Below are positions 12,177 to 37,359 of a DNA stretch of 64,000 bases, one piece after another (position 1 is the first letter of the stretch; each line of letters starts with the position of its first letter). The notes under the pieces were generated by a model. The model was not told the DNA's origin. It searched no databases and saw only the letters and a program-made list of their open reading frames with translations. A program made the translations under genes and the position numbers. Origin of the DNA: Anthoceros angustus (taxonomy: Eukaryota; Plantae; Anthocerotophyta). Location of the stretch: positions 992,001 to 1,056,000 of the forward strand of contig MU008168.1 in assembly GCA_010909165.1 (NCBI GenBank). The letters are read 5' to 3'.

Positions 12177-14903
12177 ATGAGCGACTGTTTCACGACCGGA
12201 GTGGTAGGGCTAGGAGGAGCGGGAGCTCGAGCTGGAGCTCGTGTCCTTGCCGCTGTTGCTGCTCCTCCTGCGGCCAGTGTGAGCCTCGAACAGCATTGGG
12301 AGCAGCATCAGCAACATTGGAAGCAGCAGCAGCAACATTGGAAGCAGCAGCAGCAACATTGGAAGCAGCAGCAACAACAGCAGCATTTGGTGGTAGAAAG
12401 TTGCCTGGCCAAAGGGCAGCTGACCGAAGCTGTGCACGCATTTGAGCTCTTGGTGCTGCAGGAGCGGCAGGAGCGGCAGGAGGAGGAAGTGGAGGAGGTC
12501 GAGGGAGGCCGACCCCTCATCCATGGACTCGTGCAGTGTTGCAGTGCGCAGCGGAATGTGCTTGCAGCCAGGCGGCTCCATGCCCTGGCAGTCTGGAGCG
12601 GATGCCACGATGCATTCGTGGCCAACCACATCATGGCCGTGTACGCAGGGGCAGGCAGAGTGCAGGAGGCAGCTCTGGCCTTCGAGGACGTGGATGAGCC
12701 CGACGTGCACATGTGGGCTACCGTCATCTCAGCGCACGCTCGGCACGGCCAGCCCAGCCGGGCCTTGGAGCTCTACAGCCGGATGCGACGGGACTTTCCG
12801 GCTGTGAAGCCCGACAACCATGTGTTCGTGGCTGCTCTCAAGGCGTGCGGTGCGGCAAGGGATCTGGCCGCCGCCCACCAGCTGCATGCCCACCTCCCCC
12901 GGGAAGGGCATCTGGACGTGTTTGTGGCCAACTGCCTGCTGGACGTGTACGCCAAGTGCGGGAGCGTGGAGGATGCGAGGAAGGTGTTCGACGCCGTGCC
13001 AGTGGATGTCAGGGATGTGGTCACCTGGACGTCCATGATGGCAGGGTACGCGCAGCAGGGCATGGGGCAGGAGGCGCTGCGTCTGTATGCCGTCATGCAG
13101 CAGCACCGCGAAATCGTGCAGCCCAATCTGGTGACCTTCGTCTGCCTGCTTCAAGCGTGTGCTGGCGTCGGGGATTTGCGGCAGGCCAAGCTCCTTCATG
13201 GCCACATTATCCAGGAGCTGGAGCGGGAGCAGCACCTGCAGCAGGAAGAGGAGGAAGCAGCAGGTAGGGGCTTGAGACTGGGGAACTGCCTGGTTGACTG
13301 CTACGCCAAGTGCGGGAGCTTGGGAGATGCGCGCAGGGTGTTCGACGCCCTGCCCACCAGGGATGTGGTGACATGGACGGCCATGATCGCAGGATATGCG
13401 CGGCAGGGGCATGGCGAGGAGGCCCTCTGGCTCTACGCCCGCCTGCAGCGGCAGGGGATGGCTCCGGCAGCGGACCACGTCACTTTTGTGTGCCTCCTGC
13501 AAGCCTGCGCCAGCGTGGGACCCCGGGCGCTGCAGCAGGGCTTGCAGCTGCATGAAGACATTCGGGATCGGGGCCTCCTGCACTCCCATGCGCAGCTGGG
13601 GAACTGCCTGGTGGACATGTATTCCAAGTGCGGGAGCTTGGAGCGGGCTCGCAGCTTGTTCCACGCCCTGCCCACTAGGGATGTGTGCTCCTGGACTGCC
13701 CTCATCGCAGGCTATGCGCAGCAGGGATTGGGGCGGGAGGCTCTGTGTCTGTACGCAAGCATGCAGGAGGAGGGCGTCACCCTAGCCAACCACGTGACGT
13801 TTGTGTGCCTCCTGCAGGCGTGTGCAGGTGTGGGGGCGCTGCACCAGGGCAGGCTGCTCCATGTGGACATTCTTCAGAAGGCGGGGCTGCTGGAAGGTCA
13901 CGTGGAGGTGGGCAACAGCCTGGTGGACATGTATGCCAAGTGTGGGAGGTTGGAGGATGCTCACCGCCTCTTCCAAGCCTTGCCCACAAGAAATGTGGTC
14001 ACGTGGAATGCTTTGCTCAACGGCCTGGCTGAACACTGTGATGCTGGCAGGGCAGTCAGCTGCTTCCAGAGCATGCTTCACCAAGGGTTCGAGCCCAACG
14101 AGAACACCTTCACCTGCCTGCTTGTGGCGTGCAGTCGGGCAGGCCTGGTGGACGAGGGCCAGTTCTACTTTCGGAAGATGGTGGAGGGGCATGGCATTGT
14201 GCCCAAGGACCATCACTACAACTGCATGGCTGATCTTCTCGGCCGCTCTGGGCGACTGGACGAGGCACAACTCCTGCTGGCCACAGCCCCGCTTCGGGAT
14301 TACGTGGTGGGCTGGACGTGTTTGCTCACTGCCTGCAGAAGCCATGGGGATACGGAGCGTGGGAGGCGATGCTTCCACCATCTTGTAGGATTGGAACCTG
14401 AGAATGCAACTGCCTACGTTCTTTTGGCCAACATCTATGCAGATGCGGGACAGTGGGAGGAGGTAGATAGGATAGAGAGCATGAGGAAGTGTGCTGGTGC
14501 TTCGAAGAAGCCTGCCGTGGCACGCATTGAAGTGAAGACGGAGGTGCATGAGTTTAGAGTCGGGGAAGAGAGGTGTGATACCCCTAGCCTCAAGAGAGTG
14601 AACATGAGATGGAAGGAGGATGGAGGCCATGTGCCGCACACGCACCTGGTGCTCAAGGCAGCGGCGTCTGAGCAAGACAAGGAGGATGCCTTGTGCGGGC
14701 ATGCGGAGAAGTTGGCTCTCGCTTATGGTTTGCTCAACACTCCCAGTGGAACCAGTCTGCTAGTCACCAAAAATCTTCGCATGTGCTGTGACTGCCACAG
14801 TAGCACAAAGGTCATGTCCCATGTCGAGAAGCGGGATATTACAGTGAGAGATTTGCACAGAATACACCGTTTCGCAAATGGCTCTTGTTCATGTGGCCAT
14901 TGA
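12177..14903 (+). CDS. PLS-PPR protein with DYW:KP domain, terminal tripeptide truncated (CSCGH*), 908 aa
   Basis: PLS array, KKPAVARIEV, GGHVP, HAEKLALAYG, CCDCH, ends SCSCGH*. Confidence 0.92.
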   Translation: MSDCFTTGVVGLGGAGARAGARVLAAVAAPPAASVSLEQHWEQHQQHWKQQQQHWKQQQQHWKQQQQQQHLVVESCLAKGQLTEAVHAFELLVLQERQERQEEEVEEVEGGRPLIHGLVQCCSAQRNVLAARRLHALAVWSGCHDAFVANHIMAVYAGAGRVQEAALAFEDVDEPDVHMWATVISAHARHGQPSRALELYSRMRRDFPAVKPDNHVFVAALKACGAARDLAAAHQLHAHLPREGHLDVFVANCLLDVYAKCGSVEDARKVFDAVPVDVRDVVTWTSMMAGYAQQGMGQEALRLYAVMQQHREIVQPNLVTFVCLLQACAGVGDLRQAKLLHGHIIQELEREQHLQQEEEEAAGRGLRLGNCLVDCYAKCGSLGDARRVFDALPTRDVVTWTAMIAGYARQGHGEEALWLYARLQRQGMAPAADHVTFVCLLQACASVGPRALQQGLQLHEDIRDRGLLHSHAQLGNCLVDMYSKCGSLERARSLFHALPTRDVCSWTALIAGYAQQGLGREALCLYASMQEEGVTLANHVTFVCLLQACAGVGALHQGRLLHVDILQKAGLLEGHVEVGNSLVDMYAKCGRLEDAHRLFQALPTRNVVTWNALLNGLAEHCDAGRAVSCFQSMLHQGFEPNENTFTCLLVACSRAGLVDEGQFYFRKMVEGHGIVPKDHHYNCMADLLGRSGRLDEAQLLLATAPLRDYVVGWTCLLTACRSHGDTERGRRCFHHLVGLEPENATAYVLLANIYADAGQWEEVDRIESMRKCAGASKKPAVARIEVKTEVHEFRVGEERCDTPSLKRVNMRWKEDGGHVPHTHLVLKAAASEQDKEDALCGHAEKLALAYGLLNTPSGTSLLVTKNLRMCCDCHSSTKVMSHVEKRDITVRDLHRIHRFANGSCSCGH
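12291..12374 (+). repeat. 21-bp coding tandem repeat x4 (QHWKQQQ)
   Basis: Units of the form caacattggaagcagcagcag at 12291, 12312, 12333 and 12354. Confidence 0.9.
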
Positions 14904-16586: not shown

Positions 16587-18746
16587 TCAATAGTAGCACA
16601 TGTGAGTCAGCAGGGTCCAAAGGTGCGTAATGCATTCACCACCTATGGCAAGCTGTTCCATATGCTCTTGAGGCTTGTTAGCCACAGCAATTGAGATGGC
16701 AAAATCACACCAGACATCGGCTAACAGCTTCCATCGCCCTTCTCCAGCAGCTATCAAAAGACGGGCAAGGTTTTTTCCAACTCCTAAAACTCCATCATTC
16801 CTGCCGGACATATTATCAAGTTCTGCCCCATGGCGATTGTAATCTACTACAGTGTCCCGGTACACCTTTCTGCCGATGTCAGGATGGCATGGCAGCAGCT
16901 CTGTCTTTGTCACCAGCAGATACAGGAGATACCTGGACAGGTATGCAGCCAGTTCCTTGTAACTCAAATCAGGCACAGGTTCTTGTGAGGATGCCACCTC
17001 CCCCGACACAGTTGTTGCATTGCTAACTTCCTTTTCGCAAATGCAAGTGGCGATGTGCCAATGCATAAGGGCATGCTCTAGGTCAGTGTTACTGGCAAAC
17101 CGGAAAGCACTGTTCTCTTGGAGATCCAGCAGACTGCTCATGACTCGTGCCCTCAAACTCACCAGCTCTGGTGACCATTCCTTGCACCTGTCCAGCACCC
17201 TCTCTGTTAGCCTGTTCATCACCTTGTCGGAGGTCGCCCTAGAGAGGGAGCCAACATGCGGTTGCATCGCCATAACTTTCTCAAGCAGCTTCCCGCACAT
17301 GCCATTCGTCGGGATTGAACTTGCCACCAGTCTGTGGAACAAACTTCGGTCGTGCTTGTGCACTGGGATCATGGCAATCTGATCGAGGGAACCCCTCCAG
17401 TACGCTAATCTGAGGCTACCTATCCAGGTCCGAAGAGCCAGGAGAGGATGGAGCTGGCAGGCTCGATGCCCTGGCCGATGCGCGCGCACATGGGAACAGG
17501 CCAGCATAACCAGAGTCCAATCCGACAGCAGTATCCTGACGAGCTGATACACTTCGATGCCCAACCCTACCAGCAACAGCGTCACGGTGATCCACTTGGA
17601 CGCCTCCAACTTGGGAGAGGAGCCATGAATTTGCACAAGAGTGAGAAGGAAGAGGACAGCCATGATGAGCAGGCCGACGTTGAGCAGACGCAGGCACAAT
17701 CCGAGGCGGGAGAAGGCAGTCCCAGCTGCCTTGGTGTAGATGCTGTCGAACAGGAAACGGAGCTCGAAGTCCAAGACCTTCCTGACCCTGGCAGGATCCT
17801 TGAGATACTGTGTGAAGAGATTCCTGGTCCCTGCCAACCCTCGCTCGTACATGTACAAGCCGGTGAGCCTCCTCCTCAGCATCTTGAACAGCGCGTGCCC
17901 TAAGCACAAGTCCCGGAGGTAGTCCCTGGCCGGCAAGGACTCGCACTCCTCCACCTCATAATACCTCACCGTGGCCTTGCTGCTGTCTATGCTCTCGTGC
18001 ACCCCGAACGTCCCTGTTTCCGACGACGCATCCAGCATGCTTTGGTACCACTCCGCCTCTCCCACCACGATGTAATGCACCCGCCCGTCATCCTGGAGGA
18101 TTCGCATGAGTTCCATGAACTTGTAGATGGGCTGGACGACCTTCACCACGGACGTCCTGCTGGCATAGAAGAGAGCCATGGTGCGTTCCGCGTACTTGTT
18201 GGAGCCGGCAGCCAGCAGGCAGAGGGCGACGATGAGGAAGGGCCCGCGCCCGGTTTGGGAGATGAGATAGACCACCAGGCCCAGCTGGATGAGCATGGTG
18301 AGGCCATGGCGGGGCCAGAACTCGGCATCCGTGATGGAGTAGGCGGTGATGTTGTCCGGCGCCCCGAGGTGCAGCAGCAGAATGGGTCCCCACAGCGAGT
18401 ACACCACGGTGCTCCCGTGCCCGCCCAAGACGTTGGGGAGCATGAGGCCCAGGCAGTAGAGAGCTGCGGCGTCGGAAGAATTGTAGGCCAGCCAGGCCAC
18501 GAGGCGCAGGCCACTGCTCCACTTCCTGCTGCCTCCCGTGGCCAGCAGCAGCAGCTGCAGGCACATGCTGGTTAGCATGAGCGCCGGGATCTGCAGGTCC
18601 TCCAGCCCGGTCACGAACCTCCGTGCATTCTCGGATAGCCCCTGTGCTGGCTTCACCAGACCTGCTGTGAGCAGGAGAAGCAGCAGCGCCAGCAATCCAT
18701 GCCTACAGGGCCCAGGTCCAGCCATGGGAACGAACTTGTGTAGCAT
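16587..18746 (-). CDS. DUF4220 + DUF594 domain membrane protein, 719 aa, intronless
   Basis: DUF4220-type LWGPILLLHLGAPDNITAYSITDAEFWPRH and KYAERTMAL; several TM segments; DUF594-type C-terminus WKLLADVW...HMEQLAIGGECITHLWTLLTH. Confidence 0.85.
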   Translation of the reverse strand: MLHKFVPMAGPGPCRHGLLALLLLLLTAGLVKPAQGLSENARRFVTGLEDLQIPALMLTSMCLQLLLLATGGSRKWSSGLRLVAWLAYNSSDAAALYCLGLMLPNVLGGHGSTVVYSLWGPILLLHLGAPDNITAYSITDAEFWPRHGLTMLIQLGLVVYLISQTGRGPFLIVALCLLAAGSNKYAERTMALFYASRTSVVKVVQPIYKFMELMRILQDDGRVHYIVVGEAEWYQSMLDASSETGTFGVHESIDSSKATVRYYEVEECESLPARDYLRDLCLGHALFKMLRRRLTGLYMYERGLAGTRNLFTQYLKDPARVRKVLDFELRFLFDSIYTKAAGTAFSRLGLCLRLLNVGLLIMAVLFLLTLVQIHGSSPKLEASKWITVTLLLVGLGIEVYQLVRILLSDWTLVMLACSHVRAHRPGHRACQLHPLLALRTWIGSLRLAYWRGSLDQIAMIPVHKHDRSLFHRLVASSIPTNGMCGKLLEKVMAMQPHVGSLSRATSDKVMNRLTERVLDRCKEWSPELVSLRARVMSSLLDLQENSAFRFASNTDLEHALMHWHIATCICEKEVSNATTVSGEVASSQEPVPDLSYKELAAYLSRYLLYLLVTKTELLPCHPDIGRKVYRDTVVDYNRHGAELDNMSGRNDGVLGVGKNLARLLIAAGEGRWKLLADVWCDFAISIAVANKPQEHMEQLAIGGECITHLWTLLTHMCYY

Positions 18747-21078: not shown

Positions 21079-22258
21079 ATGGCCACTGTATGGCAACCGG
21101 AATCGTTGTGGACCCAGCAAATTCGGGGGTGTACAGGCTAGGGCTTTCTAGGAGCAGCTCCGGCTGATCTCAACTTGGGAAGCCAAGGTCTGGCAAACAA
21201 CCATGTCTCCAGGTGCAGCAGTATAAGGAACTCAGCACTTCGCAGAGAATGGATGGCTGGGAAATGATTTCCAGCAATGGTTGTTTGCCAGACCTTGGCT
21301 TCCCAAGATGAGCTCTTCACAGACAAACCTGCGCCTGCAGGCAGGCGTGCAGGATCGGCAAGGGGCGTCGCAACAGCTGTTGCCGTGTGCACATTTTGTG
21401 AGCAGGGGAAGCTTACTGAGGTCGTTGGAGCCCTGGAATCTCTAGCGCAGAGGGACTGTCCTATTTCTCGCTCTCTCTTTTTTTCTGTGCTCAAACTGTG
21501 TGCAGAGGAGAAGGATCTGGGTTTGGGACGGCGAATTCATGATCTCACTGTCGAACTTGGGTACGAGTCAATTACGTACTTGGGGAACGATAACTTGCGG
21601 ATGTATGCTCGTGAAGGTAGGCCACAGGAGGCCATTGATGTGTTCACCAGGGTGCGCAAGCCACATGCTTATGTGTGGTTTTCCATAATCTCTACACATG
21701 CAAACCATGGGAAACTTAATGAGGCTATACAACTGTACCATGAGAAGCTTAGTGCAGGTGTGAAGGCCGATGCTCACTCTCTGTTGCAGCCCTTCAAGCT
21801 TGTGCATTGGCTGCGGACTTGGAATGTGGCTGACAAGAGCACTGTGATGTATTGCACAGGGGCATTGTTCCTAACTTGTTTGTTGGCAACTGCCTAGTGG
21901 ACATGGATGCAAAATGTGGGGAACTGGAAGATGCACGCAGGGTTTCTGACAGCTTGCCAACAAAAGATGTGGTGACATGGAATGCCCTGATAGCTGGGTA
22001 TGCAAATCATGGGCTCGGCCAAGAGGCGCTGGCTGTGTGTGGACTAATGGAGCAGGAGGGCCTGATAGCGGGAAGCTATGCTACTTTTGCTTGCCTTCTG
22101 AAGGCCTGTGCAAGCTGTGGCGCCATACACAAGAGCAGGGAGCTGCACACGCAGCCCTGATAGCTGGGTATGCAAATCATGAGCATGGCCAAGAGGCGCT
22201 TATTCTGTATGAGGAAGTGGAACAGGAGGGCCTGATTGTGGCTGACCATGTTCCGTAA
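21079..22258 (+). pseudogene. Degenerate PLS-PPR fragment (paralog of 31035-31816) lacking the PDF segment
   Basis: Starts MATVWQPESLWTQQ. Contains CEQGKLTEVV...DLGLGRRIHDL...YLGNDNLRMY, then a frameshift. An internal deletion is marked by identical 28-mers gccctgatagctgggtatgcaaatcatg at 21984 and 22154. Truncated at about 22258. Confidence 0.85.
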
Positions 22259-22260
22259 GT

Positions 22261-22436
22261 GTTTTAGGAGTTGGAGTAGACCTTGCCCCTCTGTCGGCCG
22301 ATGTCTGGTGTGACTTTGAGCCGAGGCCTCAAGAGCGTGTGGAACAGCTTGCCATGGTTGGTGAATTCATCACGCACCTCTTTGGGCCCTGCTGTCTCGC
22401 ATGGGCTTTAGGAGTTAGGGTTTAGGGTTAATTGAC
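22261..22436 (+). pseudogene. Remnant of the DUF594 3' end (inverted copy of 16587-16790)
   Basis: gttttaggagttgga..accttgccc, gccgatgtctggtgtga.tttg, gcctcaagagc..tggaacagcttgccat and ggtgaa..cat.acgcacct match the reverse complement of the end of the 16587-18746 gene, with internal deletions. Confidence 0.85.
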
Positions 22437-22633
22437 GTAACAACAAACCCATCCGTTAGTTTCCGTTACTATCCGTTAGTTTCCCTTAGGCCCTTCCAGT
22501 CGTAGACGATGTACGCGTATTTTGCTTCTTTCCATCCTCGGCCTCTTGAAGCAGCGATGGCTGAATCAAAGGCTCCAGGAGATGGATACCAGGACGAAGG
22601 ACTAGGCCTGATCGGGTTGTTGTACTCCTCACC

Positions 22634-25144
22634 TTGTCCAGAATAACGGTAGGAGAAATGGAGATGGAGGTGGTGCTCCCGCGGCGAGGTGATGGCATCG
22701 CGGGAGCTCCACAGCAGCAAACGTGGTGGATGCAGCAGCCAAGCCGTTTGCGTTCTCGCATCCCGGCAGCGGCAGCCGCAGCCGCAGCCGCGGTAGCAGG
22801 AAAGAAAGGAACAAGGAGCCTGAGCAGCAGCAGCATCGGTGGCAAGGAGCGGCAGCAGGAGCTCTTGTGGCATGACTTCCTCTCGGACCCGTTGCAGTGG
22901 TTGGACCAGAGGGCCGTCAAGCTGAGTGCGAACCATCCTGACTTCAGGCACAAGACATCCAAGCAGGCATTATGGCTATGCACGCCGGGCTGCAGGGAAT
23001 GGCAGCTGCCGGAGGAGCCAGATGCAGGAGCAGCAGGGGGAGCGGAGCTCAGGGAGGCTGTGCAAGCATTGCATGTCTTGGTGCTTCGCAGAACCTCGCA
23101 TCTTCCCGCGTCTCTCTTTTACCGCCTACTCAAGAGATGCATTGAGTGCAAGGATCTGCGTCTGGGGAAGCGAATCCATGCACTGGCTATCAGAAGCGGG
23201 CACGCATCAGACGCATTCTTGGCCAACCACATCATTGCCATGTATGCGTCTCATGGCAAATTGGAGGACGCTCTGCAGGTGTTCTCCAACGTCACCGCTC
23301 CGGACGCTCATATGTGGGCCACCATCATCTCGGCACACGCTCGGCATGGCCAGCCAGCACAGGCTATCCAGCTGTATCGGCGGATGCGGGGTGCGTCCAG
23401 TGTGAAGCCGGACAACCACTTGTTTGTGGCAGTCCTCAAGGCCTGTGCCATGGCCAAGGATCTGGATTCCGGCAAGGAGGTGCATGCTCACATTCTGCTC
23501 GCTGATGGCAGCCCCGACATGTTTGTCAGCAGCAGCCTGGTGAACATGTATGCCAAATGCGGCAGGTTGGAGGAAGCAGCGCAGGTGTTCAGCGAGGTGG
23601 TTGGGCCCAACACACACATGTGGTCGTCCATTATTTCGGCGCACGCCCGGCATGGGCAGCCCATCCAGGCCATAAATCTGTATCGGCAAATGCGAGAATC
23701 CGAGACTTCTGTCAAGCCGGATGACCATACGTTTGCGGCGGTGCTGGGAGCCTGTGCAGCTGCAACGGATTTAGTCTCAGGCAAGGAGGTGCATGCTGAC
23801 GTTTTGGAGAGTGGGGTTCAGCTAGGCACTTTTGTTGGCACTAGCTTGGTGAACATGTATGCCAAATGCAGAAACGTGGGGGATGCTCGCCGAGTGTTTG
23901 ACACATTGCCCACACAAAGTAAGACTGTGGTCACGTGGAATGCCATGATCGCAGGGTACACGCACCAGGGCCTCGCTCAAGGAGCCCTCAGTCTGTATGG
24001 GCATATGCAAGAGGAGGGTGTGACTCCGCCCGACCAGGGTACTTTTGTCTGCCTGCTTCAAGCGTGTGCCAGCCTGGGAGCTCTCCAGCATGGGAAAGAG
24101 CTTCATGCAAAGATCAAGGATGTGGGACTAGAAGCGGACTTGCTAGTCGGCAACTGCCTGGTGAACATGTATGCCAAGTGCGGGAACTTGGCAGATGCAC
24201 GCAAGGTGTTTGACGCCTTGCCGACAAAAGATGCGGTCACATGGTCTGCTCTGCTCAATGGTTATGCCGAACATAGTGATTGTGAAATGGCAATTCAGTG
24301 TTTCGCAGATATGCGTCAGCAAGGTGTGGAGCCAGATGACAAAACTTTCATATGTCTTTTTGTAGCATGCAGTCATGCTGGCCTGGTGCATGAGGGCCAG
24401 GAGTTTTTCAGGATGATGGTGGAAGACTATGGCATTACGCCCACCGATAATCATTTCAATTGCATGATCGATCTTCTTGGACGATCAGGCCAACTTGATG
24501 AGGCAGAGAGTATGGTGCAGAGTATGCCGTTTGACAATGTTGTGGGCTGGAAATCCTTGTTGAATGCCTGCAAAAGCCACCGTGATGTAGAGCGCGGACG
24601 TCGATGTTTTGACCGTCTTGTATTATTGGAACCTGGAAATGCTTATGCATATGTTGTTCTGGGTACCATCTACGCAAATGTGGGTAGATGGGAGGATGTA
24701 AAGGCATTGGAGTGCCTGAGAAGGTCTGCGGGTGCCTCTAAGATTCCCGCAATGGTGTGCATAGAAGTCAAGAACGAGGTGCACGAGTTCACAGTTGGAG
24801 AAGAGAGGTACGATATCTCATCCAAGCTCAGAAGTGTGAACATGAGGTTGAAGGAGGAAGGAGGGCATGTGCCACAAACGGATTTGGTGCTTAAGGCAAT
24901 GTCTGAGGAGGAGAAGGAGGATGCGCTTTGTGGACATGCAGAGAAGCTGGCATTGGCATATGGTCTACTCCACACCCCAGATGGCACAAGTTTGCTGATC
25001 ACCAAAAATCTTAGAATGTGCAATGACTGCCACAGTAGCACCAAGGTCCTGTCACGCCTGGAGAAGAGGGAGATCATTGTCAGGGATGCACACAGGGTGC
25101 ACTGCTTCCGGGATGGTTTGTGTACATGCGGGGATCGACCTTGA
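22634..25144 (+). CDS. PDF(OSB)-motif + PLS-PPR + DYW:KP protein ending CTCGDRP (first ATG 22658)
   Basis: N-terminal LLWHDFLSDPLQWLDQRAVKLSANHPDFRHKTSKQALWL, PLS array, KIPAMVCIEV, GGHVP, HAEKLALAYG, CNDCH, terminal GDRP. Confidence 0.93.
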   Translation: MSRITVGEMEMEVVLPRRGDGIAGAPQQQTWWMQQPSRLRSRIPAAAAAAAAAVAGKKGTRSLSSSSIGGKERQQELLWHDFLSDPLQWLDQRAVKLSANHPDFRHKTSKQALWLCTPGCREWQLPEEPDAGAAGGAELREAVQALHVLVLRRTSHLPASLFYRLLKRCIECKDLRLGKRIHALAIRSGHASDAFLANHIIAMYASHGKLEDALQVFSNVTAPDAHMWATIISAHARHGQPAQAIQLYRRMRGASSVKPDNHLFVAVLKACAMAKDLDSGKEVHAHILLADGSPDMFVSSSLVNMYAKCGRLEEAAQVFSEVVGPNTHMWSSIISAHARHGQPIQAINLYRQMRESETSVKPDDHTFAAVLGACAAATDLVSGKEVHADVLESGVQLGTFVGTSLVNMYAKCRNVGDARRVFDTLPTQSKTVVTWNAMIAGYTHQGLAQGALSLYGHMQEEGVTPPDQGTFVCLLQACASLGALQHGKELHAKIKDVGLEADLLVGNCLVNMYAKCGNLADARKVFDALPTKDAVTWSALLNGYAEHSDCEMAIQCFADMRQQGVEPDDKTFICLFVACSHAGLVHEGQEFFRMMVEDYGITPTDNHFNCMIDLLGRSGQLDEAESMVQSMPFDNVVGWKSLLNACKSHRDVERGRRCFDRLVLLEPGNAYAYVVLGTIYANVGRWEDVKALECLRRSAGASKIPAMVCIEVKNEVHEFTVGEERYDISSKLRSVNMRLKEEGGHVPQTDLVLKAMSEEEKEDALCGHAEKLALAYGLLHTPDGTSLLITKNLRMCNDCHSSTKVLSRLEKREIIVRDAHRVHCFRDGLCTCGDRP

Positions 25145-26927: not shown

Positions 26928-28838
26928 GTGAATGATGGCCGCTCCGTTTTGAACATGAGAAGCCTTCCTGAAGGTGGGCAGCCCAACAGCTTGTTGGCCG
27001 ACTCCGCGCTCCCTTGGGCGTCTGCCTCCTGCCATAGGGTTGCAGCCGCCGTCGCCGCCGCTGGGGCCGGGGCCGGGGCCGGAGCCGGAGCTGGAGCAGG
27101 AGCAGGAGCAGGAGCAGCAACGTATGGGGCGGCGGGAGCAGTGGAGGCGGCAGCGGTGCTGCAGCGGCATCACCTCTTCCTGGATCTGGAGGCTGGCCGG
27201 GATGTGGTGATCGTCAAGGATGTACAGGTGAAATCGTTCCTGGATTTGAGTTTGCGGATTGGTGATGCTCAGCAGCAGCAGCAGAGCCAGCACAAATCCA
27301 AGAGGCTGCACTCGGATGCCTTCGGCAGGAGCACCGCCGAGAACGGTGAGCCTGTCACCAGCAGCCGCATGTTAGATCAAGGGCAAGGGCAAGGGCAAGC
27401 CGCCTCCTGTGGGAAGAAGAACGGATGCTTTTCGGCGGCAGCGGTGTTAGCAGCGTCCGCAACTTGGAATCAGCAACAGCAGCAGGAGGAGGCGGCTGCG
27501 ACGGGATCCCGGAAAGAGGCCGGCATTTCGGATGTCGAGTGCCATAGCAGCTGGAGATCCCTGTCCTCCAGCAGCCCAACTCGGTCGGAGGAGGGCAGCC
27601 GGCGGTCGCAGGAGGGGGAGAACTCTGCGTCTTTGAATGTGGATGACAGCCCTTTTGGGAGCAGCAGCGACGCTGCTGCGGCGGCGGCGGGGGGAGAAGG
27701 AGGAGGAGCTGCTGCCACGGGGACTGCAGGGGCAGAGTCGTCGGCAGGAGGAGGTGCAATAGCAGCAGCAGGAGGAGCAGCAGCTGAACAGCGCGTCTTC
27801 TCCTGCAACTTCTGCCAGAGGAAGTTCTTCAGCTCGCAGGCTTTGGGCGGACACCAGAATGCCCACAAGCGGGAGAGGACGGCGGCCAGGCGGGCTCAGC
27901 GCTTTGGATCGGTGGTGGCTCCTCGGCTCATGCCGCTGCACCTGCAGCAGCATCCTCCGCACCAGCAGGCCCGGCCGCAGCACCCCAACTGCGATGGGTT
28001 GGGAGGTGGGGGTGGCATTGTGAACCACAGATCCCTGGGCGTGCAGGCGCACTCGGCCACGCTTCAGCACCATGGCTACGCCAGCAACCAGGCCCTCATG
28101 GCCGACTGTGTTCCTCTGCCTCGGCCTGCCCATGCCCTGCACCCCGGCTGGCCCACGCAGTCGTTCATGAGCTTTCACCCGGGCATAGGCAAGTATGGTG
28201 CTGCCGCGGCGCCCAACAGCAGCAGCAGCAGCAACAACAACAACGGCCACAGCAGGACGGCTGGTCGAGGAGGAGGAGGAGTAGGAGGCGGAGGAGGAGG
28301 AGGAGTAGGAGGCGGAGGAGGAGGAGGAGTAGGAGGAGCAGGAGGCGGAGGAGCAGGAGGAGGAGGAACAGGAGGAGGAGGAGGAGGAACAGGAGGAGGA
28401 GGAGCAGGAGGAGGAGGAACAGGAGGAGGAGGAACAGGAGGAGGAGGAACAGGAGGAGGAGGAGGAGGAGGAGGAGGAGGAGGAGGAGGAGGTGGTGGTG
28501 GTGGTGGTGGAGGCGGAGGAGGAGGGGCCCCGGTCGAGGCCGCTGAGCTCATGGGCAGACCGTTTGTGCCCTCCTTCCCCGAGGACGACACCCGCGCAAG
28601 CTGGCAGGCCGCAGCTGTCCGCCCCCGCCCTGGAGAAACGTTGGCAGGGTCACTGGCGGCTTCTGCTGCTGCTGCAGCCCAGCCTCACCAACGCTTCTTC
28701 ACCAACAACACTGATCTTGCTTGTAAAGCTCGCCCTGATCTTGGACATGCTCAAGGATTTGGGGCTGACAGGCCTCGCGAAGACCCTACCCCGGCCCCCC
28801 CTAGATTAGATCTCTCTCTCCGTCTTGGATTTGATTGA
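26928..28838 (+). CDS. Single C2H2 zinc-finger (ZFP/GIS/SUPERMAN-like class) repressor with EAR motifs; first in-frame ATG 26955
   Basis: FSCNFCQRKFFSSQALGGHQNAHKRER (QALGGH finger); C-terminal LDLSLRL and N-terminal FLDLSLRIG EAR-like motifs. Confidence 0.9.
   Translation: MNDGRSVLNMRSLPEGGQPNSLLADSALPWASASCHRVAAAVAAAGAGAGAGAGAGAGAGAGAATYGAAGAVEAAAVLQRHHLFLDLEAGRDVVIVKDVQVKSFLDLSLRIGDAQQQQQSQHKSKRLHSDAFGRSTAENGEPVTSSRMLDQGQGQGQAASCGKKNGCFSAAAVLAASATWNQQQQQEEAAATGSRKEAGISDVECHSSWRSLSSSSPTRSEEGSRRSQEGENSASLNVDDSPFGSSSDAAAAAAGGEGGGAAATGTAGAESSAGGGAIAAAGGAAAEQRVFSCNFCQRKFFSSQALGGHQNAHKRERTAARRAQRFGSVVAPRLMPLHLQQHPPHQQARPQHPNCDGLGGGGGIVNHRSLGVQAHSATLQHHGYASNQALMADCVPLPRPAHALHPGWPTQSFMSFHPGIGKYGAAAAPNSSSSSNNNNGHSRTAGRGGGGVGGGGGGGVGGGGGGGVGGAGGGGAGGGGTGGGGGGTGGGGAGGGGTGGGGTGGGGTGGGGGGGGGGGGGGGGGGGGGGGGGAPVEAAELMGRPFVPSFPEDDTRASWQAAAVRPRPGETLAGSLAASAAAAAQPHQRFFTNNTDLACKARPDLGHAQGFGADRPREDPTPAPPRLDLSLRLGFD
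28269..28526 (+). repeat. (GGA)n-based coding microsatellite encoding an ~86-residue Gly-rich tract
   Basis: gga runs interrupted by gta, gca, aca, ggc and ggt codons. Confidence 0.95.
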
Positions 28839-31034
28839 CCTCATCTCACCTTCCGTTTCTTCTTCTTGACTTTCTCCTCTTTGCCTCTCTGCCTACAAGC
28901 AACAAGGCAAAAGGGCGGGGGTTTGGCAATTTGTAAGTGTGTACTCGTCCCCTCAGCAGCAGCGTCATGGAGGAAGAAGAAGGGATAGGAGGAAGGGATG
29001 ATGGACTGACGGAGATGAGTGGATGCGTAGATTGATGGATGGATGTATGTACGTGCTCGGTTGAAGGATGGATGGTAGGCTGGTTGGTTGACGGCTGCTT
29101 GCTGGCTTGGCTAGAGGATACAGCTCCTTCTTATCCACTTCGCCAGGGCCGTTCTCCCCATTCGTTCAAGCACGCTACTGCTTGCTGTTCGTCTGGGCAC
29201 TGGATTATCACCCTGGTGGGAACGCAGGTGGATGCTGGAGCCTCCATCCTTCCCTCACATCCATCTCTACTGTAGCTACTAGTACAGAAGACTTAGGCCC
29301 AATTCGTAGTTACCCCTTAGACTCCTTTTTCAGGCTCACCACGCTGACCCCACACCTGTGATTTGCTCAACACACCTCTTTGCCCCACATTCCGAGCGCT
29401 TGAGGTTCGATGGAGAAAAGGCTCTCAACAACCTTAGTGGGCTGGTCAAATTCTTTGGACCATGATATTGCGGGTGTGGAGGACGTATCTCAAGGAGGAA
29501 GCAGGTATACCTGCTGCCTGAGCTTTTGTCCCTTTTCTTGTTCTTTCGCTGTTTTCATCCATGTAGTCTAGGCTTTGTACTCAAATCACCTGCAGTGTGC
29601 CCAATTGCTAGACTAAAAGCTCCTCGTTAGACTCTGGTTGGATTGAGTCTTGCATCTCGTTTATCACCTTAGTTGGTGTTCGTGCATGCAAGTGTTAAGT
29701 CAACCAAAGTATGGACCTGTTTATGACAGAATTTTGGTTTTACTCATCATCGTGCTTTGCTTTGAAGCAGGTCAGCCCAAAGTGAATGGAGGAGGGAGCG
29801 TGTACCGGTTACACTAGGGTGCCGTTTCCTCTTCCTCCCTTCTAGCTGCACTGCTTGCTTTTTGCAAGCGAAGGATCGGCAAACTATGTGACATTGTAGG
29901 TCATACAGATGTCTGTTTGACATTATATAAAGTGAGCTTTGCTGCTTATTTACTGTACCCTGGTTCTGCTTCAAAATCCTTGTTGCTGCTTTAGTGTCGG
30001 ATACCCTCTCCTCCCTGACGTGGACAACCCTGGTCTAGCCTGTTGGGTCCGGCCATCTTCAGGGGCACAAGTTTTGAGCATCTCTGTGCTAGCCAGGAGT
30101 GAAGTTTGCAAGTTGCTGTGCAATTGGAAGACCCCAGGTCATTGTTGTGGAGGAAGAGGAGAGCGACCCAAACTACCAGGGAAAGCGCTGCGGTTGTGCT
30201 TCTTTGCAGATCCCCAAGTGGAGGTGAGTGTCTTTCTTTTCTCTGGTGGGTCCCTTTGATGGACCGTCGGATCGTACGCAGGAGTTTGTCGTACACCAAC
30301 CTTGCCTCTTGTTTCCTGTTCTTTTTCAGTTTCAGCTTGAGTACATTTTGTGACTCTTTGTTCCCAGGATACATATGTACTCGTAGGAAAGCAAAACTGT
30401 GAAAGGTTGCTTGGTGTTGCTGCTGCTCTTGTGATACAATAACTACACGGTCCCTTAGTGGCTGCCCAGTTCTGAACACATGGTGACCACTGATTTTGTC
30501 TTGGATCCAAATATAGGCTATGAAGAAGAGGTTTGTGTCTAAATATACGGATGTGCCTAAGTGAACGGGATATGATTGAAGATCCTGTGGAGTCTGTAAG
30601 ATATAGTATGCGGAAAAGAAGAATTAATTCAGATTCCATTCCCCAGCAGGCGCCGGCATTGCTCCAGTCTGACTCAGTAGCCATTTTGGAACCCACGCAC
30701 CTGATATGACGTCTCGCTTCTCCAGGTGTGGCATAAACTTCGGCCCGTACCTGATACGCCATATGCAAAGGTGCGTCATCTGGTTTATCCAGCAGACAGG
30801 CCAAGGTATTTTCTCAGCATATACTTTTCCTTCTCAGAAATTGGCCTCATCGGCAGTCTCTATGGCACCTGGCCCCCTTCCTCCGTCGACCTTATATTCA
30901 TGCTCCGCAGCTTGAACGATATGTTCCACCTGTCCTATCTGCATGCATTCGCATAAATGCTTCTCAAAGGTTGGATGGAAGGATCCGTTTACCATACTTT
31001 CAAAGGGTCATCGGTCAAAGAATGGTTTGTCACC

Positions 31035-31816
31035 CTTTTCTGCCAGATACCAAGTCGGGGGCAAAGGCACAGCTTGAAGGGCAAGTATCAAGATATGAGC
31101 ATCCGCCTTCACGCCTGACCTACGCATCTCATGGTAATGTTGTATGGCCTCCTTAGGTTTCCCATGTTTACCATAAGGAGAGATAATGGCAAATCACATG
31201 AAGGCATCTGGTTTGGCTACCCTGGTGAACACATCCATGGCCTCCTGCAGCTTACCTCCACATGCATACATGCGTAATGTATGGTTCCCGAGGTATGCGT
31301 GAACTCGTCGCCCCACAACCAAATCCTTCTTAGCTGCACAATGTTTTAGAACGGCGCAAAACATAGACTGAGATGTAGCAGAATCTGCACGACGCCCATC
31401 TCCGATCCTCCACGCCTGCCAGCTGCAGGCTTACATGGAGAGCTCGACTTGGAAGGAGAGGCACCACGACCCATCAGCATATCCAAGAAAATGAGCTGCT
31501 CATCAACTCAAGCTGGCTTAAACATGCCGTTCAACCACAGGAGCTCGCCGGACCCCTTACACCGGAAGTCAGGCGACCTAGAGCTCTTGTCATCTCGTCT
31601 GTTGTCCCACCACAAGGCCAGAAAAAATTGTTGCCACAAATGCTCCTGCACCTGGCGACGAGCATGGCTGAAAAATCCGTCCGCACCCACACATTTTCTC
31701 GGAAGTGGAAGTACTGGGCTCCTCACACTACTGCACCTGGGAGCTCCTCGTAGAATCCCTGCATACACGTCAAGTTGTTGGGTCCACAACGGGTCCGGTT
31801 CCCATGATGTGGCCAT
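31035..31816 (-). pseudogene. Degenerate PDF-motif + PLS-PPR gene fragment
   Basis: MATSWEPDPLWTQQ...EHLWQQFFLALWWDNRRDDKSSRSPDFRCKGSGELLWLNGMFKPA*VDEQL, then PPR relics (YLGNHTLRMYACGGKLQEAMDVFTRVAKPDAFM*, EAIQHYHEMRRSGVKADAH). Confidence 0.85.
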
Positions 31817-32802: not shown

Positions 32803-35800
32803 TCACATCCAGCAGCCCAGCTCCCTCAATAACTCATATATCTGAGCCTCTTGTTCATGTCTTCTATCCCCCACTAGAAACATGTGTACTTGTTGCTTAT
32901 GCTCAATCCATGCTTGGCCGGGCTTCTTCCATGCGCCTGTTTTCCGTCTCATATCATCCATTGCCTTTGCATGTTGCCACATGCCCACGTCACTGTAGAT
33001 ATTTGACATTAACACATAAGGTGCTGCTTGTCCTGTATCTACGCTTATAGCACCATCAAAGGCATACTTTCCCAGCACCACATTACCATGTTTCCGACAT
33101 GCAGCCAATAAACACAGCCACATAGTGAAAGTAGGCTGCATTGGCATAGTGGAGAGCAACTCTTCGGCTTTGTTGAAGAGTCCTGCTCTGCCAACCAGAT
33201 CGAGGAGACAAACGTAATGCTCGAGCTCTGCAGCAATGCCATGATCCCTAGTCATGCACTCAAAGTACTCCAACCCTTTATCCACCATGCCAGCATGACT
33301 ACATGCACACAAGAGCATCGTGAGTGTAACTTTATCTGGTCTCACACCTGCAGAACACATGGCCTCATAACAATGTAAGCTTGTCTCATAACTTCCTTGT
33401 TGGGCATATCCACCAATGAGTGTATTCCATGAAACCACATCAGGCTGAGCAAGTGAGTCAAACACGTTTTGAGCCTCCACCATGCTTCCACATTTGCCAT
33501 AGGTATGTATGAGGCTGTTTGCTACAGAAAGATTGCAGTCTAGTCCACTCTCAACGATACTCTGGTGTATGCACTTGCAGATATCTAAGGCTCCTGTAAC
33601 GCAGCACGCTTCCAGAACAGACAGATACGTAGCCTCATCTGATTCCCAGCCTTCTGCTTGCATGTCGGCAAATATTTGTAAAGCCTTGTTCCCGTCACCC
33701 TGCTGGGCATAGCTTTCAATCATGGCATTCCAGCACACAACATTGCGGTGGGGGAGGTTGTCAAACACATGCTGAGCATCCATGATGCTTCCACACTTCG
33801 CATACATCCTAATCAACGTGCTACCGACAAAGACATCAGACTCAAAACCCATGTCAGCTACATCAGCATGTAATTTTTTCCCCTTGTGCAGCGAGTCTAG
33901 TTTAACTCTTTGCCCCTCCACAGAAATATCTTTTTCCATTTGAGCAATGCTACCGCATGCTTGGAGAGCGCTGGCAAACGTCTGAGCATTGGGTCTCACT
34001 CCGGCTTTTCGCATGCTTCCAAAAGTACGCAAGGATTTTTCTCCTTGATGCTGATGAGCGTACGCTGCAATCATGGCACTCCAGGACACGACGTCATGTT
34101 GGGGAAATCTGTCAAACAACTGTTCAGCATCATGGATGCTCCCACATATACATGCACACAAGAGCATCGTGAGTGTAACTTTATCTGGTCTCACACCTGC
34201 AGAACACATGGCCTCATAACAATGTAAGCTTGTCTCATAACTTCCTTGTTGGGCATATCCACCAATGAGTGTATTCCATGAAACCACATCAGGCTGAGCA
34301 AGTGAGTCAAACACGTTTTGAGCCTCCACCATGCTTCCACATTTGCCATAGGTATGTATGAGGCTGTTTGCTACAGAAAGATTGCAGTCTAGTCCACTCT
34401 CAACGATACTCTGGTGTATGCACTTGCAGATATCTAAGGCTCCTGTAACGCAGCACGCTTCCAGAACAGACAGATACGTAGCCTCATCTGATTCCCAGCC
34501 TTCTGCTTGCATGTCGGCAAATATTTGTAAAGCCTTGTTCCCGTCACCCTGCTGGGCATAGCTTTCAATCATGGCATTCCAGCACACAACATTGCGGTGG
34601 GGGAGGTTGTCAAACACATGCTGAGCATCCATGATGCTTCCACACTTCGCATACATCCTAATCAACGTGCTACCGACAAAGACATCAGACTCAAAACCCA
34701 TGTCAGCTACATCAGCATGTAATTTTTTCCCCTTGTGCAGCGAGTCTAGTTTAACTCTTTGCCCCTCCACAGAAATATCTTTTTCCATTTGAGCAATGCT
34801 ACCGCATGCTTGGAGAGCGCTGGCAAACGTCTGAGCATTGGGTCTCACTCCGGCTTTTCGCATGCTTCCAAAAGTACGCAAGGATTTTTCTCCTTGATGC
34901 TGATGAGCGTACGCTGCAATCATGGCACTCCAGGACACGACGTCATGTTGGGGAAATCTGTCAAACAACTGTTCAGCATCATGGATGCTCCCACATATAG
35001 CATACACGCTAACCAAAGTGCTACCCACAAAAATATCTGATTCAGAACCTCGTGCAACAGCTGCTGTATGTACTTCTTTCGCCTTTTGGAGGGACTCAAC
35101 TTTCACATTGTGACCTTCCAAAAGTGTACTTCTCTCCTTCTCTGCAATTGCACCACATGCCTGCAGAGCAATGCCACAAGAATGAGCAGTTGGCCTAATA
35201 CCTTTTCCTTCCATTTGCCAGAAGAGCTGCAAACTTCTTTCCGGTTGTTTCTGTTGTATGTATGCTGAAATCATGGTAGTCCACGTCACCACATTGCGCT
35301 GGGACAATGTGTTAAAGACCTGTTCTGCATCCTTGATGCTCCCACACTTTGAATACATATTGACCAGCGCATTAGAGACAAAAATGTCTAAACCAAATCC
35401 CCTCCTTGCTGCTTCAGCATGTAGTTTCTTCCCCTTCTGCAGCGACTCAGCCCTCACAGCAAACCCACCCACAAGTGTGCCGGCCTCCTTTTCTGCCAGG
35501 ATGCTGCAGGCTTGAAGAGCACCGACAAAGGTTCTGGCATCTGGTTCTATGTCTTGCCCGAGCATTTGTTGGAAAATCTCCATGGCTGTCTTTCCATCAT
35601 TTCGCTGAGTATATGCTGTGAGGATTGCAGTCCAGGATACAGCATCCCGGTGAGACAATGTGTAAAACACTTCTTCAGCATCCTCAATGCTCCCACACTT
35701 TGCATACATACTGACCAGAGAGTTACCAACAAATATGTCGGTTACACATCCCAATCTAGCAGCTTCAGCATGCATTCTTTTCCCATTTTGAAGTGCCTCA

Positions 35801-37359
35801 GGTTTCACAAGCCGGCCATCCAAAAGCTCTCCTTCTTCCTGTTCTGCAATGGTGCTGCATGCATGAAGAGCGCTAACGAAAGTCCTGGCATTTCGTATGA
35901 CCCCCTTATCAGGCATCTGCAAGTAAATCTGCAGAGCTTTCCCTCCCTGGCGTTGCTGAACATATGCTCCAATCATGGCATTCCATGACACCACATCATG
36001 CTGGGAGAATCTGTCGAATACCAGCCTAGCATCCCCGACACTCCCACACTTTGCATACATACTAACCAAAGTGCTGCGGACAGAGGCAACTGATTCGAAA
36101 TTCATGCTTACAGCTGAAGCATGCATCTTCTTTGCCTTATGCAGTGACTCCAATTTGATGCTTTCCAGCTTGACAGGTGTAGCTTCTTCCTGTGCTGCAA
36201 GGGTGCCACATGCTTGAAGAGCACTGACAAAGGTGCATGAAGCAGCCTCGATGCCCTTGTCTTGCATTTTTTTGAAAATCTCCAAGGCCTTTTCTCCGTG
36301 GTCCTGCTGAGCATACGCAGCTATCATTGCATTCCATGAAACCACATCATCCTGGGGCAATCTGTCAAATAAATGTTGTGCATACAGAAGATCCCCACAC
36401 TTGGCATACATGCTGACCAAAGAGTTCCCCACAAACGGGTCGCAGTCACAACCCCGCCTAGCAGCATCAGCATGTATTACCTGTCCCCTGCTCAATGCCA
36501 TCACTTTGAGGTCTTGCCCTCCCACAAATGCACTTTTCTCCTGCTCTGCAAGGGCGGCACAAGCTTGGAGAACACTGACAAACGTCCGAGGATCTGGCCA
36601 AACTTCTTCCTCTTGCATTTGCCAATAAAGCCCTAAGCACGCCTCTGGTTGGTCCTGCTGAGAATATGCAGCCAACATTGCATTCCAGGACACTAAATCA
36701 CGGTGGAATAATCCATCAAACACACACCGAGCATTCTTGATACTCCCGCACTTTGCGTACATGCTCATCAAGCTGTTGCCAACAAAGACATCCGATCCCA
36801 ACCCATGCTTCAAAGCAGCAGCATGAACACGCTGGCCCTTTTCCAGATCTCCCAGCTTACTGCATGCTTTTATTAAGCTAACGAATGTGTAGGCATCCGG
36901 CTGCACTCCATCCTGCTGCATCTGCTCATAACACACTAGAGCCCGCCGGCATTGCCCAGCGTTGCTATACGCTGAAATGACGGCTGTCCAGGAGAAAACA
37001 GTTCGGCGTGACAATTTTCTGAACGCCTGGATTCCATCATCAAGGCTCCCACAATTGACAAGTGTGGTGACTACAAGGTCGCCCAAAAATCTGCTGGAAT
37101 CTAATCCATTGTTTGCCAGATGGGCATGTAACAACTTGGCCTCAGCCAGGGCCTTCTGTTTAGAGCATGCCTGCAACAGATTCTTGTACATTTGTACCGA
37201 TGGCACCTCTCCCTGCTGATCCATGACTCCTAGCACGTCCTGGACCATCCCTTCTTTGCATATTTTCTGGGCTTCAGCTTCACTCAAGACAAAGCTTGTC
37301 CTGCATTCAAACATCTCGTGAGATGACCAAGTGTGGAGATTGCAAATGGCTTGCATCAA
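32803..37359 (-). CDS. Large PLS-PPR E+ protein with LL motifs, no DYW domain (1518 aa); true start probably in an upstream exon (ATG 37432 or further)
   Basis: Long P-LL-S array, E1/E2, ends WKKPGQAWIEHKQQVHMFLVGDRRHEQEAQIYELLRELGCWM*. Contains an 849-bp exact internal duplication. Confidence 0.9.
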   Translation of the reverse strand: MMQAICNLHTWSSHEMFECRTSFVLSEAEAQKICKEGMVQDVLGVMDQQGEVPSVQMYKNLLQACSKQKALAEAKLLHAHLANNGLDSSRFLGDLVVTTLVNCGSLDDGIQAFRKLSRRTVFSWTAVISAYSNAGQCRRALVCYEQMQQDGVQPDAYTFVSLIKACSKLGDLEKGQRVHAAALKHGLGSDVFVGNSLMSMYAKCGSIKNARCVFDGLFHRDLVSWNAMLAAYSQQDQPEACLGLYWQMQEEEVWPDPRTFVSVLQACAALAEQEKSAFVGGQDLKVMALSRGQVIHADAARRGCDCDPFVGNSLVSMYAKCGDLLYAQHLFDRLPQDDVVSWNAMIAAYAQQDHGEKALEIFKKMQDKGIEAASCTFVSALQACGTLAAQEEATPVKLESIKLESLHKAKKMHASAVSMNFESVASVRSTLVSMYAKCGSVGDARLVFDRFSQHDVVSWNAMIGAYVQQRQGGKALQIYLQMPDKGVIRNARTFVSALHACSTIAEQEEGELLDGRLVKPEALQNGKRMHAEAARLGCVTDIFVGNSLVSMYAKCGSIEDAEEVFYTLSHRDAVSWTAILTAYTQRNDGKTAMEIFQQMLGQDIEPDARTFVGALQACSILAEKEAGTLVGGFAVRAESLQKGKKLHAEAARRGFGLDIFVSNALVNMYSKCGSIKDAEQVFNTLSQRNVVTWTTMISAYIQQKQPERSLQLFWQMEGKGIRPTAHSCGIALQACGAIAEKERSTLLEGHNVKVESLQKAKEVHTAAVARGSESDIFVGSTLVSVYAICGSIHDAEQLFDRFPQHDVVSWSAMIAAYAHQHQGEKSLRTFGSMRKAGVRPNAQTFASALQACGSIAQMEKDISVEGQRVKLDSLHKGKKLHADVADMGFESDVFVGSTLIRMYAKCGSIMDAQHVFDNLPHRNVVCWNAMIESYAQQGDGNKALQIFADMQAEGWESDEATYLSVLEACCVTGALDICKCIHQSIVESGLDCNLSVANSLIHTYGKCGSMVEAQNVFDSLAQPDVVSWNTLIGGYAQQGSYETSLHCYEAMCSAGVRPDKVTLTMLLCACICGSIHDAEQLFDRFPQHDVVSWSAMIAAYAHQHQGEKSLRTFGSMRKAGVRPNAQTFASALQACGSIAQMEKDISVEGQRVKLDSLHKGKKLHADVADMGFESDVFVGSTLIRMYAKCGSIMDAQHVFDNLPHRNVVCWNAMIESYAQQGDGNKALQIFADMQAEGWESDEATYLSVLEACCVTGALDICKCIHQSIVESGLDCNLSVANSLIHTYGKCGSMVEAQNVFDSLAQPDVVSWNTLIGGYAQQGSYETSLHCYEAMCSAGVRPDKVTLTMLLCACSHAGMVDKGLEYFECMTRDHGIAAELEHYVCLLDLVGRAGLFNKAEELLSTMPMQPTFTMWLCLLAACRKHGNVVLGKYAFDGAISVDTGQAAPYVLMSNIYSDVGMWQHAKAMDDMRRKTGAWKKPGQAWIEHKQQVHMFLVGDRRHEQEAQIYELLRELGCWM
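33300..34999. repeat. Apparently exact 849-bp tandem duplication inside the PPR CDS
   Basis: ORF pairs 33509/34358 and 33910/34759 are offset by 849 with matching translations up to the junction. Identity runs 33300-34150 vs 34149-34999. Confidence 0.95.

Follow-up and report, generated by a model that had tools for sequence, protein, structure and literature searches.

What might explain why a predicted RNA editing factor of a hornwort carries, ahead of its RNA-reading repeats, a motif of organellar single-stranded DNA-binding (OSB) proteins? The gene in question lies in a 64,000-nucleotide stretch of the Anthoceros angustus genome (assembly GCA_010909165.1, contig MU008168.1, positions 992,001 to 1,056,000 of the forward strand), which we refer to as the window and in whose coordinates all positions are given. 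An earlier note, made from the sequence without database searches, had proposed that an OSB-type PDF motif is fused here to a pentatricopeptide repeat (PPR) protein with a complete DYW:KP deaminase domain. We find that the segment is a genuine homolog of the OSB PDF motif, that 22658-25144 is an intact nuclear gene whose product is a PPR-E-DYW protein of the PLS class and belongs with the hornwort DYW:KP (DRH/GRP-like) proteins, and that the PDF-PPR pairing is real, old and recurrent across seedless land plants. Our preferred explanation, to which we give a probability of roughly 0.7, is that this intact KP gene with its genuine PDF module represents an old PDF-PPR design, in which the module is retained as an accessory single-strand binder.

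A profile made from two of the motif copies in the window was searched against 1.84 billion (1.84e9) representative proteins and recovered 639 of them at E ≤ 1e-3, of which 149 were at E ≤ 1e-10. Most are proteins of 250-520 residues with 2-13 motif copies near the C-terminus, several have weak SSB (PF00436) matches, and both Arabidopsis OSB1 (Q9SX99, whose motif at aa 186-227 of 261 matched at E 5.9e-11) and an OSB1-like protein of Populus are among them. Hidden Markov models (HMMs) of OSB motifs recognize the hornwort segment. The first, built from 396 motif stretches of 144 matches without similarity to the hornwort PPR region and still including a few N-terminal fragments of PPR proteins, gave 60.3 bits (E 8e-18 over all 1283 six-frame open reading frames, ORFs, of the window), and a stricter model of 84 motifs, from which every PPR-linked or ambiguous sequence had been removed, gave 54-55 bits, whereas 2000 shuffled versions of the 64-residue piece scored no higher than 10.1 bits. 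BLASTP aligned the segment without gaps to aa 182-227 of Arabidopsis OSB1 with 19 of 46 residues identical (41%, pairwise E 2e-13), and in a joint alignment of 115 motifs it retains all four invariant columns (W12, D24, P35 and F37) and nine of the ten nearly invariant ones. A word-indexed search with aa 60-135 returned no match, within the word and E-value limits that a 76-residue piece faces in a 5.8e9 database. Two other proteins with the motif differ in build: a Coptis chinensis gene model (P0028) has a kinesin motor after its PDF motifs, possibly a fused annotation, and a Kingdonia uniflora protein (P0001) of 1160 residues combines 13 PDF copies with an SSB-like domain.

The predicted structure agrees with this assignment. 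The AlphaFold2 model of the motif has a mean predicted local distance difference test score of 79.7, with a helix over ELLWHDFLSDP and short strands, and Foldseek matched it in the Swiss-Prot AlphaFold set to OSB1, OSB2, OSB3 and OSB4 only (for OSB1 aa 180-232, TM score 0.76 and root-mean-square deviation 1.3 Å). In the AlphaFold database cluster set, all 25 matches at a probability of at least 0.98 are uncharacterized or OSB-named proteins of similar size, the sole non-OSB functional name being one "IBB domain-containing protein". The Protein Data Bank held no match to the motif by sequence or by fold, and BFVD no fold match with E ≤ 0.001. On these models the hornwort motif is predicted to form the same small fold as the PDF region of OSB proteins, and HMM scores, OSB1 identity and fold together bear out the identification made in the earlier note. 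An ESM Atlas feature search gave a phage gp49-like lead (0.63), which was rejected, since BFVD gave no match at that threshold and no viral entry stood in the inspected subset of top matches; the same search also pointed weakly to a chlorophyte SSB-family cluster (0.46).

The motif belongs to an uninterrupted gene. The frame at 22634..25144 of the forward strand comprises 836 codons without a stop, so that motif, PPR array and complete DYW:KP domain share one ORF, as had been claimed, and the residues quoted in the earlier note as encoded at 22859-23002 match the translation exactly. A TGA at 22562-22564 precedes the frame, which is open from 22565; the TTG listed as its start was assigned by the ORF finder only. 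The earliest in-frame ATGs are at 22658, 22664 and 22730, and the product is therefore likely to have 828 residues or slightly fewer. Pfam recognizes the PPR families (E 1e-61), the E motif and the deaminase (Table 1) but is silent on aa 1-137, where nothing, PF00436 included, matched even at E ≤ 10, because Pfam has no PDF model. About 67 presequence-like residues stand ahead of the motif; from M33 they are rich in Arg, Ser and Ala and contain almost no acidic residues, and the residues preceding the motif in homologs are unrelated in sequence, so the extension is not conserved. This composition and lack of conservation are as expected of a targeting peptide, and the N-terminal extension looks like a targeting presequence. 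Between the end of the motif and the first PPR element there are 10-25 residues.

How does this protein compare with the known hornwort editors? The DYW:KP PPR proteins of hornworts (DRH, GRP) are candidate and, in designer form, proven U-to-C editing enzymes (PMC9478123, PMC11845758). They are distinguished by K..P in place of PG, HAE in place of HSE, a domain of 132 or 133 residues, absence of xHP, a Met preceding CxxC and a final triplet that is not DYW (PMC9478123, PMC11845758), and a conserved active-site lysine, Lys88 of KP6, is essential for U-to-C activity (PMC11845758). The gene of the window encodes a PPR array, an E motif and the HxE and CxxC zinc-ligand signatures that define the PLS-class PPR-E-DYW proteins, and the HAEK, CNDC and GDRP that the earlier note had read in it lie at 24935-24946, 25019-25030 and, terminally, 25130-25141. 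Like the hornwort DYW:KP proteins it has a PLS array, an E motif and a 133-residue DYW domain with HAE; the xHP is absent (EFTVGEERYD), Met precedes CxxC (NLRMCNDC), and a lysine occupies position 88 of the last 133 residues, in TKNLRMC. Against a KP-like profile the DYW domain reaches 243 bits, compared with 160 bits for a PG-like profile, a margin somewhat favored by the KP-like profile having been built from the protein's own nearest homologs. By the published criteria, its sequence assigns it to the DYW:KP subclass, which would make it a candidate U-to-C editor. Its nearest homologs end in DRH or GRP, the hornwort DYW:KP subgroups. Unlike these named subgroups its own tail is DRP, between DRH and GRP, the place of the PG box reads K-I-P-A (SKIPAMVCIEV) rather than K-K-P-A, and it has the N-terminal PDF module, which is absent from the family descriptions found.

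The fusion is not confined to this hornwort. Six of the top 150 profile matches resemble its PPR region by phmmer and carry the motif at the N-terminus, and four of these are full-length PPR proteins by Pfam: those of Diphasiastrum complanatum (P0139, KAJ7517631), Ceratopteris richardii (P0133, KAH7429238), Adiantum capillus-veneris (P0036, KAI5061374, two motifs) and a Logan assembly (P0009, three motifs). The other two are a short Logan fragment (P0142) and a short, transcript-derived ORF of Pteridium aquilinum (P0148), in which the PDF motif and the first PPR repeats are on one mRNA. With the Diphasiastrum motif as query, at least 75 PPR proteins of that lycophyte were found, 658-1386 residues long, each bearing between one and three PDF motifs at its N-terminus and recorded as a "hypothetical protein". 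The pairing also occurs in a Sphagnum jensenii protein, in metagenome fragments and in a PPR-DYW protein of the PG type from the liverwort Calypogeia fissa (P0292). The closest full-length homologs of the hornwort protein (45-59% identity, with tails such as DRH and GRP) all come from Logan assemblies, and the motif is present in three hornwort-type KP homologs (P0271, P0280 and P0335); the contigs that carry P0280 and P0271 (L002 and L003) have no poly(A). None of the Ginkgo and Cryptomeria PPR proteins among the homologs has the motif. The earlier note had allowed that unannotated homologs may exist; a survey of lycophyte, ferns, moss, liverwort and hornwort-type KP homologs has turned up many, and the PDF-PPR architecture occurs on E-type, canonical C-to-U (DYW:PG) and KP factors alike.

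OSB proteins (Arabidopsis OSB1-4, of which OSB2 is PTAC9) are organellar single-stranded DNA (ssDNA)-binding proteins with an SSB-like OB fold and, after it, one to three or more C-terminal PDF motifs. They share with the hornwort protein a PDF module of about 50 residues with the signature W..F..P..W.D.R..K....PDF.HK....LWL....W and the same predicted helix plus short strands, and the one to three tandem PDF copies of Diphasiastrum PPR proteins recall those of OSB proteins. Unlike an OSB protein, the hornwort protein has no OB/SSB domain, and its motif is N-terminal and joined to a PPR-E-DYW RNA editor, whereas OSB motifs are C-terminal. In the motif tree, moreover, motifs linked to PPR arrays are separated as a branch from those of OSB proteins. 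For these reasons the hornwort protein is not an OSB protein. On a maximum likelihood tree of 119 motifs, the PPR or OSB label requires two changes, compared with 24-30 for shuffled labels, and one branch, with a Shimodaira-Hasegawa-like approximate likelihood ratio (SH-aLRT) support of 78, has all 34 PPR-linked motifs to the same side of it. One unclassified protein of 164 residues, without OB fold or PPR repeats, groups with them. Since PPR-linked motifs cluster apart from OSB-linked ones, the tree suggests one ancient PDF-PPR fusion, which would have been followed by frequent loss and tandem multiplication.

Two more motif copies in the window were found with the OSB HMMs, and both are decayed pseudogenes. 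The nearer one belongs to a duplicate of the upstream region and first part of the gene (Table 1), which besides its truncation shows a 1-nt insertion and the loss of the first ATG; its degraded motif at about 15713-15907 scores 33-42 bits. Within the motif, duplicate and intact gene differ at 12 sites, of which about ten are non-synonymous and two synonymous, and the duplicate has changed the conserved residues P19 to R, F37 to L and W47 to R, at all three of which the intact gene has the family consensus. The second pseudogene has a motif at 31511-31660 (49 bits), a stop after it and then frame-shifted PPR remnants. For the intact gene, contigs of related species, about 95.5% identical, span 22934-24931 without indels, beginning at 22934, inside the motif. 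Over codons 279-586, 22 codon changes are synonymous and 16 non-synonymous, a count that rests on 40 of the 97 differences to related species and gives a rough ratio of non-synonymous to synonymous rates near 0.25; the PPR region evolves under constraint.

Is the motif-coding part transcribed? Run X1, which is guessed to be RNA and shares its sample with a presumed DNA run (30 versus 98 Mb of contigs), contains 93-97% of sampled words, with 93% for 22655-23060. The run covers the whole ORF and contains no credible joint that would excise 22859-23002, the one joint listed having a side of 22 nt. In related species, several studies included, guessed-RNA runs hold 0.13-0.15 of the words of 22655-23060, as many as DNA runs do. 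A contig of a related species (run X6) joins 21269 to 22854 via 38 other letters, among which is an ATG that is not in the motif's frame. A different 5' structure of the ortholog, a paralog or a mapping artifact may lie behind it; because its ATG is out of frame, we treat it as one of the latter two.

What would a PDF module do on an RNA editor? In a PPR tract, it is the N-terminus that points to the 5' side of the RNA footprint. We infer that the module acts as an accessory binder of single-stranded nucleic acid at this end. The putative presequence precedes the motif, and the module would stay on the mature protein. Lying some 10-25 residues ahead of the first PPR repeat, where the tract meets the 5' side of the footprint, it could bind single-stranded nucleic acid without regard to sequence. 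There it might add affinity or keep the substrate single-stranded, or it might anchor the factor in nucleoids or at places of transcription, in which ssDNA and nascent RNA occur together. For the PDF motif of OSB1, sufficiency for ssDNA binding has been reported, as has, for OSB1 and OSB2, a preference for ssDNA over double-stranded DNA and RNA (PMC6963530, PMC4166229). Catalysis as such does not depend on the module: most relatives lack it, and PPR-DYW factors deprived of their N-termini still edit in E. coli, as PPR56 does in assays from which its N-terminus is omitted (PMC10482289).

Several observations weigh against this explanation. In the motif itself, WLDQR stands in place of the consensus WWDNR, and an R occupies column 54, where most members have P. 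The fold match is not independent of the sequence match, OSB sequences having been in the AlphaFold2 input alignment and both sides being predictions. The motif tree has about 59 columns, came from a quick search and includes many Diphasiastrum paralogs that share labels, and with so short an alignment and so many paralog rows the single fusion is held loosely. The reported preference of OSB proteins for ssDNA over RNA would fit a DNA tether better than a role in RNA affinity (PMC6963530, PMC4166229), and most KP-type and all examined seed-plant homologs have no module, which makes it dispensable for editing in general. Finally, X1 also covers flanking intergenic DNA at similar depth (about 14 on the upstream side as far as 22729, about 33-47 across the gene and beyond its downstream end), and the RNA or DNA types of the runs are guesses; transcription of the motif-coding part is therefore likely rather than proven.

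Could the module be an adaptation of U-to-C editors? The earlier note had envisaged that a DYW:KP factor with its own PDF module might be tethered to transcribing organellar DNA for co-transcriptional editing, or act on ssDNA or R-loops. In favor of this is the reportedly preferential ssDNA binding of the OSB PDF motif and the presence of an intact motif on a KP-type factor. The distribution of the motif argues the other way. Every Diphasiastrum PDF-PPR protein with a recognizable HxE...CxxC site or an intact C-terminus is of the canonical PG type, mostly with a PGCSWIEV box and an end in CSCGDYW or a near variant, and the liverwort protein is likewise PG; the motif is found in only three of the 25 HAE (KP-like) homologs, and the two other KP-like genes of the window are without it. 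A special link of the module to KP or U-to-C editors is therefore not supported, and we consider such an adaptation unlikely. A general nucleoid tether, not specific to KP proteins, may exist and belongs to the accessory-binder explanation. What would speak for nucleoid or ssDNA tethering, co-transcriptional editing and action on R-loops is a single observation, the ssDNA preference reported for OSB1 and OSB2.

Somewhat less probable still is that the module, in its PPR context, has no nucleic-acid role and instead makes protein contacts (oligomerization, or docking to OSB proteins, the nucleoid or the editosome) or caps the first repeat for folding or solubility. OSB2 has been reported as a tetramer, the cap helix at the N-terminus of the PPR tract follows immediately after the module, and the avidity provided by one to three tandem copies in Diphasiastrum could be for a partner or for nucleic acid alike. 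Against these, ssDNA binding is the only experimental activity reported for the motif, and PPR-linked copies keep W, F, R and K, which we take to be characteristic of contacts with nucleic acid. That the motif is a functionless relic, either part of a cleaved targeting peptide or a decaying remnant on a working PPR gene, is highly improbable: many related PPR factors do lack it, remnants exist (P0276 and P0372) and two local copies are decaying, but from liverworts to ferns its sequence and its predicted fold have been kept, whereas targeting peptides do not preserve their sequence, the residues ahead of it are already presequence-like, and the intact gene keeps conserved residues that its pseudogenized duplicate has lost.

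If the module is an accessory single-strand binder, the arrangement would recall the MORF/RIP, ORRM and OZ proteins of seed-plant editosomes, in which the same idea, a general binder assisting a sequence-specific PPR editor, is realized, although by analogy only. Those are separate proteins with unrelated folds, whereas the hornwort module is part of the editor itself, fused in cis, and derives from the toolkit of organellar DNA maintenance. A bolder proposal, which we regard as improbable, is that PDF-PPR editors are physically coupled to organellar DNA, the module holding them on ssDNA displaced in transcription bubbles, in R-loops or in intermediates of replication and recombination, with co-transcriptional editing or occasional action of the DYW domain on ssDNA. 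If this holds true, RNA editing would be connected with the maintenance of organellar genomes and with how editing sites are gained or lost in seedless plants.

The PDF-PPR architecture seems to be undescribed. In the literature covered, from which subscription journals were excluded, we found no link of the PDF motif or OSB proteins to PPR or DYW proteins; nor is PDF-PPR mentioned in a 2026 survey of domain fusions among editing factors. PPR-DYW proteins are usually viewed as a targeting peptide, an RNA-reading tract and a deaminase, and the N-terminus is routinely removed in heterologous assays (PMC10482289), so a folded, conserved module there has been overlooked. The module bears on whether editors in plants without MORF-type helpers carry their own nucleic-acid-binding or nucleoid-anchoring element, and it may matter for engineered C-to-U and U-to-C editors built from PPR-DYW proteins. 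The gene of the window is distinctive as an uninterrupted KP-type copy with all catalytic and motif residues in place, and is suited to functional tests.

Table 1. The PDF-PPR gene, its decayed copies and neighboring features in the window.
Feature	Position	Strand	Basis
Complete coding sequence of the PDF-PPR-E-DYW:KP protein, first ATG to TGA stop	22658..25144	+	uninterrupted ORF; Pfam PPR, E_motif, DYW_deaminase
Presequence-like N-terminal extension	22658..22858	+	composition
PDF motif ELLWHDFLSDPLQWLDQRAVKLSANHPDFRHKTSKQALWLCTPGCREWQ, homologous to OSB PDF motifs	22859..23005	+	OSB HMMs, BLASTP, AlphaFold2
PLS-type PPR array, about 15 repeats, RNA-recognition tract	23045..24577	+	Pfam PPR, PPR_1, PPR_2, PPR_3, PPR_long
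E motif (E1/E2)	24578..24766	+	PF20431 at aa 649-711, E 4.6e-12
DYW:KP-type deaminase domain, 133 residues	24743..25141	+	PF14432 at aa 744-834, E 1.1e-35
Truncated inverted duplicate of the gene's upstream region and first ~290 codons	15253..16674	-	blastn, ~87% identity
Second, more distant PDF-PPR pseudogene	30900..31816	-	three-frame reading, ORF list
KP-like DYW gene	5844..8936		
KP-like DYW gene	12177..14903	+	
Intact DUF4220/DUF594 gene	16587..18746	-	
Decayed PPR gene pieces without PDF motif	21277..22258	+	
Very long PLS-type PPR gene (E/E+)	32803..37359	-	
Very long PLS-type PPR gene (E/E+)	37557..41306	+	
Very long PLS-type PPR gene (E/E+)	41553..44594	-	
ORF with one plant-type C2H2 zinc finger	26928..28838	+	

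The window is a PPR gene cluster, in which the PDF-PPR gene is accompanied by two KP-like DYW genes, three long E/E+ genes and a DUF4220/DUF594 gene, the 3' end of which is abutted and slightly overlapped by the inverted duplicate. The second of the KP-like genes has an odd HWKQQQQ repeat run in its N-terminus and a tail shortened to SCSCGH. The three long PPR genes (1013-1518 aa), which lie head-to-head and tail-to-tail, end soon after a KKPGQ.WIE box and are of the E+ or truncated-DYW kind, with no deaminase core. In the decayed PPR pieces just upstream of the PDF-PPR gene there are internal repeats (21984-22066 resembles 22154-22236), and one segment is 81% identical to 24138-24244 of that gene; the bins at 21868-22201 have a summed depth of 1e4-1e5 in all four runs, which probably represents many short contigs of paralogous PPR repeats and not expression. 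In the ORF downstream of the PDF-PPR gene, the single zinc finger stands amid long low-complexity runs of Gly, Ala, Gln and Ser, and the opposite strand reads as poly-Pro.

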